Positions 1 to 41,582 of a stretch of DNA of 64,000 bases are shown here, piece by piece. Location of the stretch: sequence record MW373745.1; one strand, given 5' to 3'. Under the pieces are notes generated by a model. The model had not been told where the DNA came from. It did not search any database and worked only from the letters and a program-made list of their open reading frames with translations. The translations under genes were made by a program, and so were the position numbers. Position 1 is the stretch's first letter. Each line of letters opens with the position of its first letter.

Positions 1-1
1 A

Positions 2-139
2 GCAAAGAAAGTATTGGATGATTGCCAGAAAATGGATATGGTGATTAAGCAAATGTCTGAAGAACTCGGTATACCAGAAGAGGTTATTAGAAATGGCAAG
101 TTTCAAAGAAAGGGCTATTTTAAGAATGGCTACATTTAG
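2..139 (+). CDS. 3' end of an ORF entering the window (HTH-like tail KQMSEELGIPEEVIRNG)
   Basis: Frame open from nt 2 to TAG at 137-139 (AKKVLDDC...GYFKNGYI*), translated by hand. Confidence 0.45.
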   Translation, partial: AKKVLDDCQKMDMVIKQMSEELGIPEEVIRNGKFQRKGYFKNGYI

Positions 140-644
140 ACACAATAACTTGTTATATTATGTTATAATTGAAAGGAGAAGGGGTGTCAAAGGTGACCAT
201 ACTTGTGTAGAACCACATTTTGGTGCTTTTGTAACTGATATAGAAAATATCTTAAAAATTTCTGATACTAAGCAATTGTTGTTACAACTCAAACACAGAA
301 AGGATATTTTAAAGATTTTAAACCCAGATAAAATAGAAACAAATTCTCAATTAGTTTTATCCTATGTATTAAGTGTTCTAAGAGATTATATTAAAGAACA
401 TTATACATTGTTTATTAAGCTTGTGACTAATGAAGAATTAATGAAAAAATATATAAAATTATTACCTTATGTTTGTACTGATTTAAAGTATACTCCTATA
501 GATATTTCAAATGAAATTAGAACGGATTTTGATGGAACTAGGAAGCGTTTTCTTGTGCTATTGCTCAGAAAATCAAAAGATTTAGACAAACAAGATGTAC
601 TAAAATCACTTAGTAATATCAATTTAAGTAATTATATATTATAA
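93..644 (+). CDS. hypothetical protein; real start may be GTG184 with a 2-nt frameshift near 205
   Basis: 183-aa ORF. Extended -10 TGTTATAAT (161-169) and AAGGAG (173-178) point to an out-of-frame GTG at 184. Confidence 0.5.
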   Translation: MASFKERAILRMATFRHNNLLYYVIIERRRGVKGDHTCVEPHFGAFVTDIENILKISDTKQLLLQLKHRKDILKILNPDKIETNSQLVLSYVLSVLRDYIKEHYTLFIKLVTNEELMKKYIKLLPYVCTDLKYTPIDISNEIRTDFDGTRKRFLVLLLRKSKDLDKQDVLKSLSNINLSNYIL

Positions 645-660
645 TAACAATAAAAGAGGT
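623..660 (+). promoter_or_regulatory. promoter TTTAAG-N11-TATAAT plus RBS for the nrdA C-half
   Basis: TTTAAG 623-628, TATAAT 640-645, AAGAGGT 654-660. Confidence 0.7.
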
Positions 661-663
661 GCT

Positions 664-762
664 ATGATAAAAATAACTAAAAAAACTGAAAAAATACCTG
701 TATACGATATAGAAGTTAAGGATAATCATAACTTTTTTGCAAATGGATTGTGTGTTCACAAT
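664..762 (+). other. split intein C fragment (IntC, 33 aa)
   Basis: VYDIEVKDNHNFFANGLCVHN followed by Cys(+1): intein blocks F and G ending His-Asn, directly after the start Met. Confidence 0.9.
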
Positions 763-1707
763 TGTGAAATATCTGTGCCTAGTCATAGTTTAGATAATTA
801 TAGGGGTATACCAGGAGAACTAGGAACTTGTATCTTAGGTAATATAAATTTTGGACATTCTAAAGAATCTGACATCCCAAAAGTTGCTGATTTCTTAGTT
901 AGGTTCTTAGATAATATGATTGATATTTCTGATTTTGCTATGCCAGAAATTGAATACTCAGCTACAAAACGTAGAACATTAGGTATTGGTGTTTCTAACT
1001 TATTTGGATATCTTGCTAAATCGAAATTATTTTACAATACAAAAGAAGCACGCGAACATATTAATGATTTAATGGAATTATTTTATTTTAACTTAGTTAA
1101 AACTTCAATAGATTTAGCAAAAGAACGAGGTGCTTGTGAATTATATAATGAATCTTTTTATAGTGATAATAAGTTTATATTCGAAAGATATTTAGAAGCT
1201 GGGATTAAACCTGAATTTAAAACAAAATTAGATTGGGAGTCACTTCGTGAAGAATTATCTAAATACGGTATGCGCCATTCAAGCTTGTCAGCTGTACCGC
1301 CCGCTGGGAACAGTTCAAAGCCAAGCTCAGCAACACCTGGTATCGAACCTCCAAGAGAATTAGTAACTATTAAAACAGAAAAAAGTTCTACTGTAAAACA
1401 GTTGGTTCCTTTCTATAAAACAGCCAAAAAATATTATACGACTGCTTGGGGTGTTGACTTTAATAATAAAGATTATCTTAAATTAGTGAGTACAATACAA
1501 AGATATGTAGATCAAAGTATTAGTACAAATCAATATTATAATATCGTAGAAACTAAAAAAGTTAATATTGAAGATGTTATAGAAGAATTTATAGAATGCT
1601 TCAATTTAGGTGTCAAATCATTGTATTATGCTAATTTTAGAACTACAGATGATGCAGATGGTGATCAAGTAATTGAAGGTTGTGGGTCTGGAGGTTGTAG
1701 CGTTTAA
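664..1707 (+). CDS. nrdA: ribonucleotide reductase class Ia alpha subunit, C-terminal half, fused to a split-intein C fragment
   Basis: CEI after the intein end, ELGTCILGNINF, RRTLGIGV, PPAGNSS, KSLYY (radical-relay Tyr pair), C-terminal GCGSGGC redox pair. Confidence 0.95.
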   Translation: MIKITKKTEKIPVYDIEVKDNHNFFANGLCVHNCEISVPSHSLDNYRGIPGELGTCILGNINFGHSKESDIPKVADFLVRFLDNMIDISDFAMPEIEYSATKRRTLGIGVSNLFGYLAKSKLFYNTKEAREHINDLMELFYFNLVKTSIDLAKERGACELYNESFYSDNKFIFERYLEAGIKPEFKTKLDWESLREELSKYGMRHSSLSAVPPAGNSSKPSSATPGIEPPRELVTIKTEKSSTVKQLVPFYKTAKKYYTTAWGVDFNNKDYLKLVSTIQRYVDQSISTNQYYNIVETKKVNIEDVIEEFIECFNLGVKSLYYANFRTTDDADGDQVIEGCGSGGCSV

Positions 1708-3404: not shown

Positions 3405-4415
3405 ATGAATAAAATAGACTTCTCGGGTTCTGAATGTTCATATGAAAAACTACTAAATGGAACATTAGAGTTTGAAGGTATTCGAGCTGCGATAATGACA
3501 ACCGATAAATGTTGTTTTAGTTGTGAATATTGTTGTAATTCAGGTTTTACAGATTTTAATGCTGCTAAAAATACTAAAAGCGAAGCAGATTTAAAATGTT
3601 TTAATTTGGTTAAAGCTATATTTCCTAGATTAAAATCCGCAGTTTTATGTGGTGGTGAACCACTAATGTGTGATTATCTTTATGATTATTTAGACTTATT
3701 TAAGGATCTAAAAGACGTAACAATTTTAACAAATCTATTATATATAAAAGATCATTATAAACGTCTAAAAGAATATAGAAACCTAGATTTAGTTACAACT
3801 TATCACGCTTCTCAAATTAATTCTAATCAATATATTGAAAGACTTAAATATTTCTTAGACATAGATTTACCAAAAGAAGTTAAATTATTTTTTAACCATA
3901 AAAAACCAGATTTAATAGAAAGAACTCAAAATGTTAAAGATTTCTTAGAATCTCAAGGATTTACTAATATTATTTGTACTCATATTTCAGGATTTGGTTT
4001 TAGTAATCCAAATAAAAATGTAGCAGGCGTTGACCTTAATGCAGATAGAGACTACGTAATGATTTCTCAAGGAACTAAGAAATATATGAATGAATCTGAG
4101 TTTGCGAGTCAAAATTATCTCGGTATGGTCTGCAATGGTTTGAGACTTCACGTTTACCCAGATAGAATCATTGAAAATTGTTCAAGAAAAACTTTGACTG
4201 TAGAAGAAGTTCTAAAGTTAAAAGATTATCAAGTTTGTAAATTCAAAAGTTGTAATGTTGGTATGTGTTTGAATTATTTTAATAAATACAATGTTAAATA
4301 CTTAAAGAATATCAATTTTAATTGTATAACACCTCAAATTGATTATGATGAAGAAACAATAAAAATATTAGATTGTTTGAATTTTTACGGAGTAGAAGAC
4401 TATGAAAAATATTGA
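3405..4415 (+). CDS. radical SAM protein
   Basis: CxxxCxxC (CCFSCEYC), GGEP motif, extra C-terminal cysteines. Confidence 0.9.
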   Translation: MNKIDFSGSECSYEKLLNGTLEFEGIRAAIMTTDKCCFSCEYCCNSGFTDFNAAKNTKSEADLKCFNLVKAIFPRLKSAVLCGGEPLMCDYLYDYLDLFKDLKDVTILTNLLYIKDHYKRLKEYRNLDLVTTYHASQINSNQYIERLKYFLDIDLPKEVKLFFNHKKPDLIERTQNVKDFLESQGFTNIICTHISGFGFSNPNKNVAGVDLNADRDYVMISQGTKKYMNESEFASQNYLGMVCNGLRLHVYPDRIIENCSRKTLTVEEVLKLKDYQVCKFKSCNVGMCLNYFNKYNVKYLKNINFNCITPQIDYDEETIKILDCLNFYGVEDYEKY

Positions 4416-6809: not shown

Positions 6810-7724
6810 TTAAGCTTCCGTAATTGCAAACTTATATAACATCGGAGTAGTTGCAGAATGTAAAGGGTGTATTGTATATGCATTTCTTGTAAATATACCT
6901 ACAGTTCTTTCACCTGATTTATAATTATAAGCAGTTGTTAAGTTCATACAATATGGGCTATAAATCAACGAATTAACACCCTTTTCTTTATGAGATTTTA
7001 AACCCACATAAGCATTATTATCATCAGGATTTGGATTTAAATAATATCTTGTATTATTAATCTTACCTAAGAAATAATCATTCGCTCTATTTTCATCTGT
7101 TGAGTCATCTATTCTTGAATAAGTAAAACTTAATGATAATATACCACCTACACCAGTTTGTGGAAGTATACAAAAACTATCGTATGTTCTAAAATTAGGT
7201 GAATTCATTTTAATAACTAAATCATTTACCTTTTTAGATATATGAAATAAGTTTGTTTCGGCATTTTGTTTAGAATCGTTGTTATCATCTAACGTAATAC
7301 CTTCTGATTCAACTGCATTTTCTTTAATAAGATTTATAATTTTTTCAGTTTCTTTGTGTGCTGCAGAAGACTTGACCCAGTTAATGAATAATTCTGGTGT
7401 TTGTTCATTTCCGGCTTTATTAAGATTACTTAAATTTAATAAATCTTCCCAAGCTTCCTGTGATATTTTGATAATAGATTTATTAGTATCAACATCAATT
7501 TGTTTTTTAATAATTTTAAATGTATCTTGAGTTTCTTGTCTTGCGAAAACATATCCAGATGGTTGCATCATAGGTTGAACTTCAGCAATGTGATGACCTA
7601 TAAACGATTTGATTTTATCTTTTAAGATATCACCTAACATAACTTGGTAAAAATCTGCATCTATACCTTCGCTAATTAAGTTTGTAGTCTCCTTAAGAGA
7701 ATTTTCTAATAATAGTTTATACAT
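6810..7724 (-). CDS. T4 gp23/gp24-like capsid (vertex) protein paralog
   Basis: EVQPMMQPSGYVFA resembles gp23 VQPM..PTG.VFA; C-terminal RTVGIFTRNAY; late-type AATAAATA upstream. Confidence 0.7.
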   Translation of the reverse strand: MYKLLLENSLKETTNLISEGIDADFYQVMLGDILKDKIKSFIGHHIAEVQPMMQPSGYVFARQETQDTFKIIKKQIDVDTNKSIIKISQEAWEDLLNLSNLNKAGNEQTPELFINWVKSSAAHKETEKIINLIKENAVESEGITLDDNNDSKQNAETNLFHISKKVNDLVIKMNSPNFRTYDSFCILPQTGVGGILSLSFTYSRIDDSTDENRANDYFLGKINNTRYYLNPNPDDNNAYVGLKSHKEKGVNSLIYSPYCMNLTTAYNYKSGERTVGIFTRNAYTIHPLHSATTPMLYKFAITEA

Positions 7725-7801: not shown

Positions 7802-7825
7802 TTTTAAGTTATTTTATATTATAAT
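7802..7825 (+). promoter_or_regulatory. promoter TTTTAAG-N11-TATAAT
   Basis: Exact motif and spacing. Confidence 0.7.
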
Positions 7826-10818: not shown

Positions 10819-10912
10819 CCAACTAAACTATTATAAAATATTATATTTTAATTTTAAACTAAAGTTCTAAAATTTCAGCAAGAATTAAGTTCAAATATAT
10901 TATAATTCTACA

Positions 10913-12277: not shown

Positions 12278-12290
12278 AAGTTTAATAATA

Positions 12291-12334
12291 TTTTAAGATA
12301 TTTTAAGATATTTTAAGATATTTTATATTATAAT
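12291..12334 (+). promoter_or_regulatory. (TTTTAAGATA)x3 followed by TATAAT promoter
   Basis: Three 10-bp copies at 12291-12320; the last is N11 from TATAAT (12329-12334). Confidence 0.7.
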
Positions 12335-14532: not shown

Positions 14533-14604
14533 GATCTTTAGGCTTTAAGAATCTTTTTAGTTCAGCTATATTATAATCATATATAACACCTAAGGTAATA
14601 AAAT

Positions 14605-16878: not shown

Positions 16879-16937
16879 TTTAAGTTTAAAATTAGTCCAA
16901 ATATATTATAATTAAAAAATCAAATAAAGGAGTTGAA

Positions 16938-18174: not shown

Positions 18175-19194
18175 GTGATGCATAGTGATGTTATCCAAAC
18201 TCTAAGTTCAGCAGGCGCTTACTTACCTAATGACACTATATGTCCTAGAGCAAAACTAGACACTGGCACATACTGCAACTATCGTTGTTATTTTTGCTAT
18301 TACCAAAATGAGTTAGATAAAAAGACACCATTTGAAGTCATTAAAAAAAGAATAGATACTTTGTATAGTATAGGTTGTAGAGATTTTGATTTAAGTGGAG
18401 GCGAATCTTCCATACACCCAGATTTCTTTAAAATCCTAGAATATATTAAATCTTTGAATCCAGATAATAAAATATCTTGTTTGACAAATGGATCTAAATT
18501 TCAGAATAAAGATTTTCTTAAAAAAGCAAAAGATCTTGGGTTATCTGAAATATTATTTTCATTACATAGTGTTAATGAAACTCACGATAAAATAACTGGG
18601 ATAAAAAATTCTTATAATTATATAATTAAAGCTATTCATAATGCAAAGGATCTTGATATTGTTGTTAGATTAAATTCAACTATTACTGATGTAAATTATA
18701 AATTAGTTGATACTGAATATTTCGAAGTTGTTGAAAAATTAGAACCACTTGAAATGAATTTTCTACCATTGAATTATTTTAGTCAGAATTCAAAATCAAA
18801 AGGTGTTAATTATTCTGAGATTTTAGAACCTATAAAAAGATTTGTAGATTCATCAAGTATACCTTTGATCAATGTCCGATATGTCCCGTTTTGTTATATG
18901 ACTGGGTATGAGAAATACGTTGTAGGATATTATCAGCACATCTATGATATTTACGATTGGAATATTGCTATGTATGAATACTTAGAACCTAATTTAGTAA
19001 ATTTAGCAAAACAAGCTGCATCTAATAGACAAAAAAGTTATAGGAAATGTGATGCTTGTAGAACTTGTAAGTATTTTTATATCTGTGATGGTATTGAGCC
19101 TCAAGTTCTTAAAGCAGGTTGTGAATTTAAACCTATTCAAGGTTCTAAAATAAAAGATGTTAATACATTTAGAAAATCATTCTTTAATTTTTAG
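18175..19194 (+). CDS. radical SAM protein with C-terminal Cys cluster
   Basis: CNYRCYFC, SGGE, TNG, C-terminal CDACRTCKYFYICDG. Confidence 0.9.
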   Translation: MMHSDVIQTLSSAGAYLPNDTICPRAKLDTGTYCNYRCYFCYYQNELDKKTPFEVIKKRIDTLYSIGCRDFDLSGGESSIHPDFFKILEYIKSLNPDNKISCLTNGSKFQNKDFLKKAKDLGLSEILFSLHSVNETHDKITGIKNSYNYIIKAIHNAKDLDIVVRLNSTITDVNYKLVDTEYFEVVEKLEPLEMNFLPLNYFSQNSKSKGVNYSEILEPIKRFVDSSSIPLINVRYVPFCYMTGYEKYVVGYYQHIYDIYDWNIAMYEYLEPNLVNLAKQAASNRQKSYRKCDACRTCKYFYICDGIEPQVLKAGCEFKPIQGSKIKDVNTFRKSFFNF

Positions 19195-24123: not shown

Positions 24124-25233
24124 ATGAACGTTTTATATAATAATGAATATATTGATTTTACAAAAGAACCTTTATTTTTTGGAACAGGTAAAAACTCACA
24201 AAGATATGATGTTATAAAATATCCTATCTTTGAAACTTTGTTTAAGAAAATGGCTGGTTTTGATTGGCAAGAAGATGAAGTACAGTGCACTAAAGATCAA
24301 GCAGATTTCAATATCTTAAATGAAGCAATGAAACATTCTTATACTAGAGTGTTAAACAAGTTAATTTTCTTAGATTCTATTCAAGGCAGGGGTTTATTAC
24401 AAACTATTGGATCTATTGTTACTAACCCAGAACTAGAAGTTTGTATGACAGAATGGCAAAGATTTGAAATTTCAAGACATTCAAGAAGTTACACTCATAT
24501 TCTTAGATCTGTTTATGCTAACCCAAGTAAGATATTTGATGAATCTTTTGAAATACCAGAATTATTAGAACTTGCAGATAGTATTTCAAAACCATATGAA
24601 GAAGCTTTTGAAGCTGTAACAAAGTATCATTTAGGATTAATAGATACTGAAGAAGTTAAAGTAAAAGTTCTTAATATGTTAGTCGAAATTAATATATTAG
24701 AAGGTGTTAGATTTTATTCTGGTTTTGCGACAATTTGGAGTATGCATTATAGCCAAGGGTTAATGGAAAGAACTGGCAAGATTTTACAATTAATTTGTAG
24801 AGATGAAAACCTACACTTAGCAATAACTCAAAATCTAATTAAGATATTGTCAAGATCTCCTGAAGAAGGCTTTATAAATGCTTGGAATTCTATTAAAGAT
24901 AATATAACTGATAGATATTTAGAAGCTGCTGATCAAGAGTTTAAGTGGATTGATTATTTGTTTAGTAAAGGTGCTTTCTTAGGTATGACACCAGAATTAG
25001 CCAAGAATTATATTAAATATCTTATTAATAAAAGATTAAAAGCTATTGGATTCAAAGAAGTTTTTGCTGGGTTTAATAAGAACCCTATACCTTGGGTGGA
25101 AACATATATTAATTATGATAAAAATGAAGTTCTCCCGCAAGAATCTGAAATAACAAATTATAAAATGGATATTTTAGACACTGAAATTAAAGATTCTGCT
25201 TTTGAAAGACTTAAGAAGAAATTAAAAATCTAA
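24124..25233 (+). CDS. nrdB: ribonucleotide reductase class Ia beta subunit
   Basis: FLDSIQ, EISRHSRSY, LEGVRFYSGF, RDENLH, PQESEITNY. Confidence 0.95.
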   Translation: MNVLYNNEYIDFTKEPLFFGTGKNSQRYDVIKYPIFETLFKKMAGFDWQEDEVQCTKDQADFNILNEAMKHSYTRVLNKLIFLDSIQGRGLLQTIGSIVTNPELEVCMTEWQRFEISRHSRSYTHILRSVYANPSKIFDESFEIPELLELADSISKPYEEAFEAVTKYHLGLIDTEEVKVKVLNMLVEINILEGVRFYSGFATIWSMHYSQGLMERTGKILQLICRDENLHLAITQNLIKILSRSPEEGFINAWNSIKDNITDRYLEAADQEFKWIDYLFSKGAFLGMTPELAKNYIKYLINKRLKAIGFKEVFAGFNKNPIPWVETYINYDKNEVLPQESEITNYKMDILDTEIKDSAFERLKKKLKI

Positions 25234-35466: not shown

Positions 35467-35673
35467 ATATTCTTTAGATTTAAAAATTTTTAAGTTTTAA
35501 TATTATATAATATGTGAAAAATTTAAATTTAAAAGATTTAACACTGTAGTGTAAATTATTAAAAATAACACTGTAGTGTTAATTATTGAATATACTAAAA
35601 CTGCTAAAATCACTAAAAATTTAAGAATATTTTAAGGATTAATACATTATAATAACATTGTAAAGGAGATCAA

Positions 35674-41503: not shown

Positions 41504-41582
41504 GTTTTATATGAAGTTTATATCTTTTTAAGTCAAAATATATTATAATTATTTTATCAAAGCTGTATATAAAGGAGATATA

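Follow-up and report, generated by a model that had tools for sequence, protein, structure and literature searches.

How does a bacteriophage make the catalytic subunit of its ribonucleotide reductase (RNR) when the gene for that subunit is broken inside the active-site loop? The question is raised by a stretch of DNA of 64,000 nucleotides (hereafter the window), which is identical (100%) to record MW373745.1 of Campylobacter phage CJLB-13 from base 124001 onward. CJLB-13 is a Firehammervirus, one of the CP220-like "group II" Campylobacter myoviruses, and 18 other records of the same group match the window at 92-99.9%. Near the start of the window lies the C-terminal half of nrdA, preceded in the same open reading frame (ORF) by the C-terminal fragment of an intein (IntC). 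It is likely that the class Ia nrdA of this phage is a fractured gene, in which a mini-intein inserted after the thiyl-radical Cys has itself been split by a cassette of two ORFs, and that NrdA is made whole by protein trans-splicing. Positions below are those of the window unless they are given for L004, the record upstream of it; a window coordinate equals the L004 coordinate minus 4000.

Two halves of nrdA around a split intein

The ORF of the C-terminal half (Table 1) begins with intein residues, VYDIEV, NHNFFANG and VHN, and passes directly into CEISVPSH and the rest of the NrdA C-extein. Residues 2-33 align with the last 32 positions of the Pfam Intein_splicing model, and residues 43-322 align with positions 222-522 of the 523 positions of the RNR barrel (E = 1.6e-56), a match far beyond chance. 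The ORF is present at 100% identity in phage F379 and at 93-99% in six more phages. It carries CEI, GTCILGN, LYYAN and, in the C-terminal tail, CGSGGC. Following the roles known from E. coli NrdA, we take these to supply the E441 equivalent (the Glu of CEI), the second redox Cys, the YY radical-transfer pair and the C-terminal Cys pair, respectively. An in-frame TAA at 625-627 shuts the frame upstream, and the stop-to-stop ORF runs from 628.

The N-terminal half is found upstream of the window. Its ORF of 534 aa (L004 2179..3783) consists of a 438-aa N-extein and a 96-aa N-terminal intein fragment (IntN); its start lies about 1.8 kb upstream of the window and its end 218 nt short of the window's first base, and 880 nt separate the IntN stop from the ATG of IntC. 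The N-extein comprises the ATP-cone, the RNR all-alpha domain (Ribonuc_red_lgN) and barrel positions 2-213. The protein reads ...YMTNLC, then CLAGDTIVE...TSDHKF..., and ends at a TAG stop, the last six IntN residues (ECSSRI) being encoded where the first inner ORF overlaps. Net charge is -5 for IntN and +3 for the first 11 residues of IntC; charge complementarity between the halves is usual for split inteins. The 96-aa tail matches the Pfam families PT-HINT (E = 1.6e-10) and Intein_splicing (E = 1.5e-7). Among solved structures, the closest of which are split or mini inteins, IntN matched NrdJ-1 best (8ubs, E = 3.9e-8) and gp41-1 as well, and IntC matched Spl DnaX, gp41-1 and NrdJ-1. Within the window, six nrdA intein queries, with no PolB-type query among them, found no IntN-like or other intein pieces.

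All the sequence features of a class 1 split intein are present: Cys1 and the block B T-x-x-H in one half, His-Asn followed by Cys+1 in the other, a separate start and stop for each, and colinear exteins. So are those of a class Ia NrdA, with ATP-cone, all-alpha and barrel domains, the N-L-C-x-E loop and an nrdB partner.

Insertion point and sister alleles

In phage CP220 NrdA is encoded in one piece, colinear with both halves, and reads ...YMTNLC-CEISVPSH... without interruption; CP21 NrdA does likewise through NLC-CEI. Because CP220 NrdA is uninterrupted at NLC-CEI, the insert is exactly IntN, two ORFs and IntC. The predicted spliced product is a 752-aa NrdA in which NLCCEI has the class Ia N-L-C-x-E spacing, and a split position one residue after the thiyl-radical Cys is supported by this sequence comparison.

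Eight phages (CJLB-13, F379, CJLB-12, CPt10, CP20, WX1, IBB_35 and CC_R7) share the four-gene arrangement down to its stops and starts. It occurs as well in metagenome- or isolate-associated contigs (L006, L007 and L008, and contigs of runs X1 and X7), and the metagenome contigs with the split have diverged to ~88% nucleotide identity. The same insertion point, here called site 1, is empty in CP220, CP21, CJLB-14 and a contig of run X2.

A third state of site 1 is seen in an uncultured relative (locus L012), whose one-piece NrdA of 864 aa (P0034) has a contiguous 131-aa mini-intein at the same site. This intein was found by the IntN search, is 57% identical to IntN and is homologous to both halves. 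Alignment to P0034 puts the break between ...DTIV and IKITKK..., in the loop that in inteins is the usual seat of an endonuclease domain. The contiguous state of P0034 is likely ancestral, and the simplest history would be the invasion of a contiguous mini-intein by a two-ORF cassette.

An earlier note on this DNA, made from its letters, had recognized an ORF that starts with IntC blocks F and G and continues with CEI behind the TAA at 625. It had placed the N-half and its IntN outside the window and the split directly after the thiyl-radical Cys, and had thought an assembly frameshift unlikely. Each of these points held: the N-half ending in NLC and an IntN is there, the uninterrupted NLCCEI of CP220 matches the expected NLCxEI spacing, and the stops and starts recur in eight phage genomes and several independent metagenome contigs. 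What had gone unnoticed was the pair of ORFs that separates the halves, and it is this pair that makes the locus a fractured gene.

Table 1. Features of the nrdA locus and its partner gene, in window coordinates.
Feature	Position	Strand	Remarks
Inner ORF 1, 124 aa (relatives 111-113 aa)	-235..139 (L004 3765..4139); 1..139 in window	+	overlaps last 19 nt of IntN gene
Inner ORF 2, 183 aa (relatives 215-217 aa)	93..644	+	overlaps inner ORF 1 by 47 nt
Promoter-like motif TTTAAGT-N5-TATATTATAAT	623..645	+	inside 3' end of inner ORF 2
Shine-Dalgarno AAGAGGT	653..659	+	4 nt 5' of IntC ATG; invariant in 8 copies
IntC and NrdA C-extein ORF, 347 aa	664..1707	+	33-aa IntC and 314 aa
IntC, 33 aa, blocks F and G, His-Asn end	664..762	+	Pfam and solved-structure matches
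NrdA C-extein, 314 aa plus stop, class Ia	763..1707	+	Cys+1, then Glu-Ile; Pfam
Site 2, empty here (PPAGN/SSKPS)	1311/1312		comparison with CP220, CPt10 and WX1
TTwAGw-N5-TATATTATAAT sites	625-645, 1781-1801, 7805-7825, 10886-10906, 12314-12334, 14557-14577, 16892-16912, 35633-35653, 41529-41549	+	8 exact, 1 relaxed
nrdB, RNR small subunit, intact	24124..25233	+	Ribonuc_red_sm, E = 3.8e-48

Purifying selection on exteins and intein

Rates of nonsynonymous and synonymous substitution (dN and dS) were estimated by the Nei-Gojobori method between split-bearing lineages, chiefly CJLB-13 and L006, for which dS is 0.58-0.86 over the exteins. For this pair dN/dS was 0.03 in the N-extein (dS 0.84) and 0.04-0.05 in the C-extein, 0.02 in IntC (seven silent changes, one replacement) and 0.15 in IntN. 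Across split-bearing lineages overall the exteins gave 0.02-0.05. Pairwise comparison of CJLB-13, L006 and L008 gave 0.30-0.36 for inner ORF 1 and 0.12-0.20 for inner ORF 2. All parts are under purifying selection, which is very strong on the exteins. Cys1, T-x-x-H, His-Asn and Cys+1 are invariant across the copies and in the contiguous P0034 homologue.

A promoter-like motif ahead of the C-terminal half

The earlier note had also given the C-half gene a ribosome binding site (RBS) of its own, AAGAGGT, and a promoter of its own, TTTAAG-N11-TATAAT. The RBS was confirmed as a Shine-Dalgarno (SD) sequence, and the F379 record annotates an RBS at the same AAGAGGT site. The promoter survived in part. 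TTTAAG (623-628) and TATAAT (640-645) lie where they had been placed, but the 11-nt spacer between them is not sigma-70-like; a generic sigma-70 scan found nothing canonical at 623-645 and no enrichment in the window (32 found, 28 expected). What stands is that the site is a copy of a recurrent phage motif.

The 11-mer TATATTATAAT, which holds the TATAAT, has eight exact copies in the window against 0.92 expected, a number reached by none of 100 shuffles. All eight copies are on the + strand with TTwAGw exactly 5 nt upstream, and each has an SD sequence within the next 9-22 nt and then a start codon. A relaxed form of the pattern yields nine sites on the + strand and none on the - strand, with 0.44 expected. 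At the IntC gene the motif is kept in all eight copies of the element, with single-base variants; the N-half gene and the inner ORFs are without a TTwAGw-N5-TATATTATAAT motif. Being recurrent, strand-specific and gene-proximal, the motif most likely represents a phage promoter class, and it would drive transcription of the C-half gene. A motif carried on the cassette would fit the idea, put forward by Dassa et al., of an invader that supplies the expression signals for the downstream half. The Campylobacter phage papers searched contained no description of the motif.

Repeated (C)TTTTAAG runs stand directly 5' of two of the promoter-like motifs (1708-1790 and 12279-12323), an example being the three tandem ATATTTTAAG units that precede 12324. 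A phage regulator may bind the (C)TTTTAAG runs, or they may act as an UP-like element.

Further intein sites in nrdA

The nrdA genes of some phages hold up to three intervening elements. Site 2, in the C-extein, is empty in CJLB-13 and is occupied by a contiguous 146-aa mini-intein in CP220 (L003 6547-6990), CPt10 and others. In WX1 (L014 3765-6335) the same intein is present in split form, with a 108-aa IntN, a 372-aa gap ORF and a 35-aa IntC; interconversion of contiguous and split forms is seen here within one group of phages (CP220 vs WX1). Since WX1 is split at site 2 as well as at site 1, its NrdA is encoded in three genes, and two trans-splicing events would be needed to assemble it. 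Site 0, in the N-extein, has an annotated contiguous 169-aa intein in IBB_35 (L005 1366-1872), and it is split, with a 348/371-aa gap ORF, in the C. coli-associated L007 (1422-4691) and L008 (191-2426).

The gap ORFs of sites 0 and 2 are homologous (E = 9e-14; phrog_5104). Common to both is a D-H...N...N block at the C-terminal end, HNH-like by eye, for which the Pfam search was negative. Comparison of the site-1 inner ORFs with these gap ORFs showed no relatedness.

A 646-aa metagenome protein, P0035, which is an unrelated P-loop protein, has one contiguous mini-intein; behind it, a second segment resembling IntN continues directly into a C-terminal HNH-like region. In P0035 the IntN may be fused to its endonuclease.

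The inner ORFs and possible mobility of the cassette

Both inner ORFs are intact in all copies. Among Campylobacter phages ORF 2 is confined to this element; two distant, free-standing homologues occur in phage-like contigs, and no recognisable split gene was seen among those flanking ORFs, some only, that were scanned around them. CJLB-13 alone has lost 102 bp in frame from ORF 2 after codon 1 (window 110/111), between two GCAAGTTTyAAAGAA direct repeats. The loss takes 34 N-terminal residues off a 217-aa ORF 2 and makes inner ORF 1 longer by 11 codons. The 102 bp are retained in all other copies, including those in contigs of runs X1, X7 and X20; in CPt10 a 1-nt deletion falls in the same N-terminal part of ORF 2. 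In an atlas search on the inner ORFs one weak lead pointed to a Cap4 nuclease (score 0.92, 142 shared features); it lay below the tool's reliability guide and was not adopted.

There are two indirect hints that the element moves. First, site 1 is occupied in some phages and empty in others that are 96-98% identical in the region (CP220 vs CPt10). Second, the codons 5' of the insertion point are TTG TGC in empty alleles and CTT TGT in five of the six occupied alleles. The three differences, all silent, fall within 6 nt, and the other 84 flanking nt have none (L004 3487-3492 vs L003 5995-6000); the pattern is suggestive of a polymorphism in the target of an endonuclease or in immunity to it. The cassette would be what makes the element mobile, and inner ORF 2 is a candidate mobility or endonuclease gene.

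A bolder version is possible, and we put it forward tentatively, as rather unlikely in its entirety. The two inner ORFs would form an unrecognised, possibly two-subunit homing endonuclease or mobility system that targets the NLC/CEI codons and brings along the promoter for the downstream half. Trans-splicing would then also gate the timing of phage RNR activity, because different promoter types would serve the two halves.

Proposed trans-splicing and its alternatives

In the pathway that we favor, the acidic IntN would pair with the basic N-terminus of IntC to give a folded HINT domain. Class 1 protein trans-splicing would follow by way of Cys1, the block B T-x-x-H, the terminal His-Asn and Cys+1. 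The product would be a 752-aa NrdA with the NLCCEI active site of the one-piece sister-phage protein, and its partner would be the NrdB whose intact gene lies in the window. Expression of the C-half would rely on its own SD sequence and on the phage promoter-like motif that the cassette carries at its 3' end. The splicing activity is supported indirectly, by purifying selection on the catalytic residues. Fast splicing, by comparison with relatives, is only an analogy.

Several points weigh against this account. The CJLB-13 record is marked "UNVERIFIED, partial genome", and support for the locus comes from assembled (Logan) contigs. Because the promoter-like motif overlaps the coding end of inner ORF 2, its conservation is in part confounded. 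The inner ORFs match no nuclease family, motif or fold in Pfam, PHROGs, NCBIfam, word-index homology, full-library profile and protein atlas searches, and AlphaFold2 models of ORF 1 (pLDDT 63) and ORF 2 (pLDDT 51) gave no significant fold match in Foldseek against the PDB. Start-sequestering hairpins at the inner-ORF and IntC starts were not better than shuffles (z -0.2 to +1.2). Finally, no co-conversion gradient surrounds the insert between CJLB-13 and L006, where identity is ~85-92% throughout; given this, we leave the lower dS of the insert uninterpreted.

The last of these points bear on the alternative that survives best, namely that the inner ORFs are no homing endonuclease at all. They would instead be unrelated cargo, for example regulator or host-takeover genes, sitting in the intein loop of an immobile, vertically inherited element. 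The empty nuclease searches, the equal divergence of insert and exteins between CJLB-13 and L006, and the free-standing ORF 2 homologues with no recognisable split gene nearby among the ORFs scanned would all be expected of cargo. The presence/absence polymorphism between phages as close as CP220 and CPt10 would not, and neither would three silent changes clustered in the two codons at the insertion point. The gaps at sites 0 and 2 hold a different, HNH-like family of ORFs, which shows that such gaps here are typically filled by mobility genes. We regard cargo as plausible, though we lean against it.

The other alternatives concern NrdA itself. The intein halves could serve as dimerisation domains that hold the NrdA pieces together unligated, and there is a precedent for a functional, unspliced two-piece NrdA in nrdA-a/nrdA-b of Aeromonas phage Aeh1 (Friedrich 2007; Crona 2010, PMC3045599). 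However, the break in the Campylobacter phages is within the active-site loop, at the C439/E441 equivalents, so a folded 129-aa HINT domain would be left in the catalytic center. Moreover, residues needed solely for splicing (Cys1, the block B His and the terminal Asn) are invariant in diverged copies and in the contiguous homologue, and the dN/dS of IntC is as low as 0.02. Non-covalent assembly is improbable on this evidence.

The published view is that nrdA is decaying. Dwivedi et al. (2013) described that of CPt10 as a "highly interrupted remnant ... present pseudogene", the CPt10 record flags it as a pseudogene, and a gene that gathers up to three intervening elements in some phages could have been wrecked by insertions, leaving the phage dependent on host RNR. 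Selection contradicts this: extein dN/dS is 0.03-0.05 at a dS of 0.58-0.86 between lineages that both bear the split. In addition, the exteins and intein halves of eight genomes and three contigs contain no frameshifts or stops, the catalytic residues of the intein are all retained, and the exteins differ hardly at all from the one-piece CP220 protein. A degenerating pseudogene is very unlikely, and the literature view of nrdA is corrected accordingly. The locus has been described in other terms as well: Carvalho et al. (2012) reported "two inteins", the CPt10 record notes the disruption of nrdA by two CDS, and the IBB_35 record labels the whole 1369-bp element an "intein". No account of the nrdA element as a split intein turned up in the literature that was searched.

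That sequencing or assembly errors in homopolymers have put stops into a truly contiguous intein with an embedded endonuclease is hardly credible: the genome is AT-rich (27.8% G+C) with many A-runs, the CJLB-13 record is unverified and the 1369 bp of IBB_35 are annotated as one intein, but several laboratories in different countries have obtained independent genomes with identical stops, starts and frames, which recur in diverged metagenome contigs as well, the inner ORFs lie in other frames with overlapping start and stop signals, and IntC has its own conserved SD sequence and ATG.

Neighboring genes

Two radical SAM proteins are encoded in the window (3405-4415 and 18175-19194), the first of them three genes downstream of nrdA; proteins of this kind are characteristic of the group II Campylobacter phages. 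A 304-aa ORF on the - strand (6810-7724) has a weak match to Gp23-like major capsid protein (E = 2e-8) and is isolated among replication genes on the + strand.

Comparison with known fractured genes

The locus is a new example of the known fractured genes, not a new mechanism. The fractured set of Dassa et al. (2009; PMC2677866) includes seven NrdA and two NrdJ loci, the NrdA inteins lying directly N-terminal to the thiyl Cys and the NrdJ inteins one residue C-terminal of that point. The GOS loci NrdA-1 to NrdA-7 of that set share with the Campylobacter phages a class I NrdA, the fractured architecture and a phage origin. They differ in that their inteins are N-terminal to the thiyl Cys, whereas the intein described here splits NLC/C, the NrdJ-type point in an NrdA, and in that they are cyanophage-like metagenome fragments, whereas the present locus is in a cultured Campylobacter phage.

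NrdJ-1 (8ubs), from ocean metagenomes, likewise combines a phage-type RNR catalytic subunit with a split mini-intein, a gene between the halves and a short IntC, and its insertion point is the same, one residue C-terminal of the thiyl-radical Cys. Its host protein is a class II NrdJ rather than a class Ia NrdA, and the similarity is distant. The genes between the halves also differ: recognisable GIY-YIG or Vsr-like endonucleases with a start-sequestering hairpin there, and two orphan ORFs with no hairpin in the Campylobacter phages. The +1 residue of NrdJ-1 is Ser, where the Campylobacter phage intein has Cys.

Closer at hand, P0034 has an intein at the same NLC/CEI site and of similar length (131 aa against 96+33 aa), but in one piece, with no cassette and presumably spliced in cis. 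The nrdA-a/mobE/nrdA-b locus of Aeromonas phage Aeh1 is also a two-gene nrdA, that of a T4-like phage, in one transcription unit with a mobile-endonuclease gene between the halves; it has no intein, its halves assemble non-covalently, and the gene between them encodes an HNH endonuclease (Friedrich 2007; Crona 2010, PMC3045599). The split intein in PolB1 of CP21 (PMC12707363, 2025) comes from the same genus, likewise interrupts a replication-related gene and has already been mined for protein engineering. Its host gene is a DNA polymerase, it is Cys-less, and it belongs to another lineage than the nrdA intein. The Cys-dependent 96/33-aa pair described here, related to NrdJ-1 and gp41-1, is a candidate tool for protein ligation in its own right, and the locus has also revealed a strong promoter-like motif for this phage group.

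Metagenome fragments are the sole source of most fractured genes known, and here one is found in cultured, closely related phages. Together these offer an empty and a split site 1 and a contiguous and a split site 2, with a contiguous site 1 in a distant, uncultured relative. In WX1 and L007, NrdA would need two or three splicing events. With this set of alleles and these multiply split genes, the origin of split inteins, the homing of a cassette and the cost of trans-splicing for an essential enzyme become directly testable in mixed infections.

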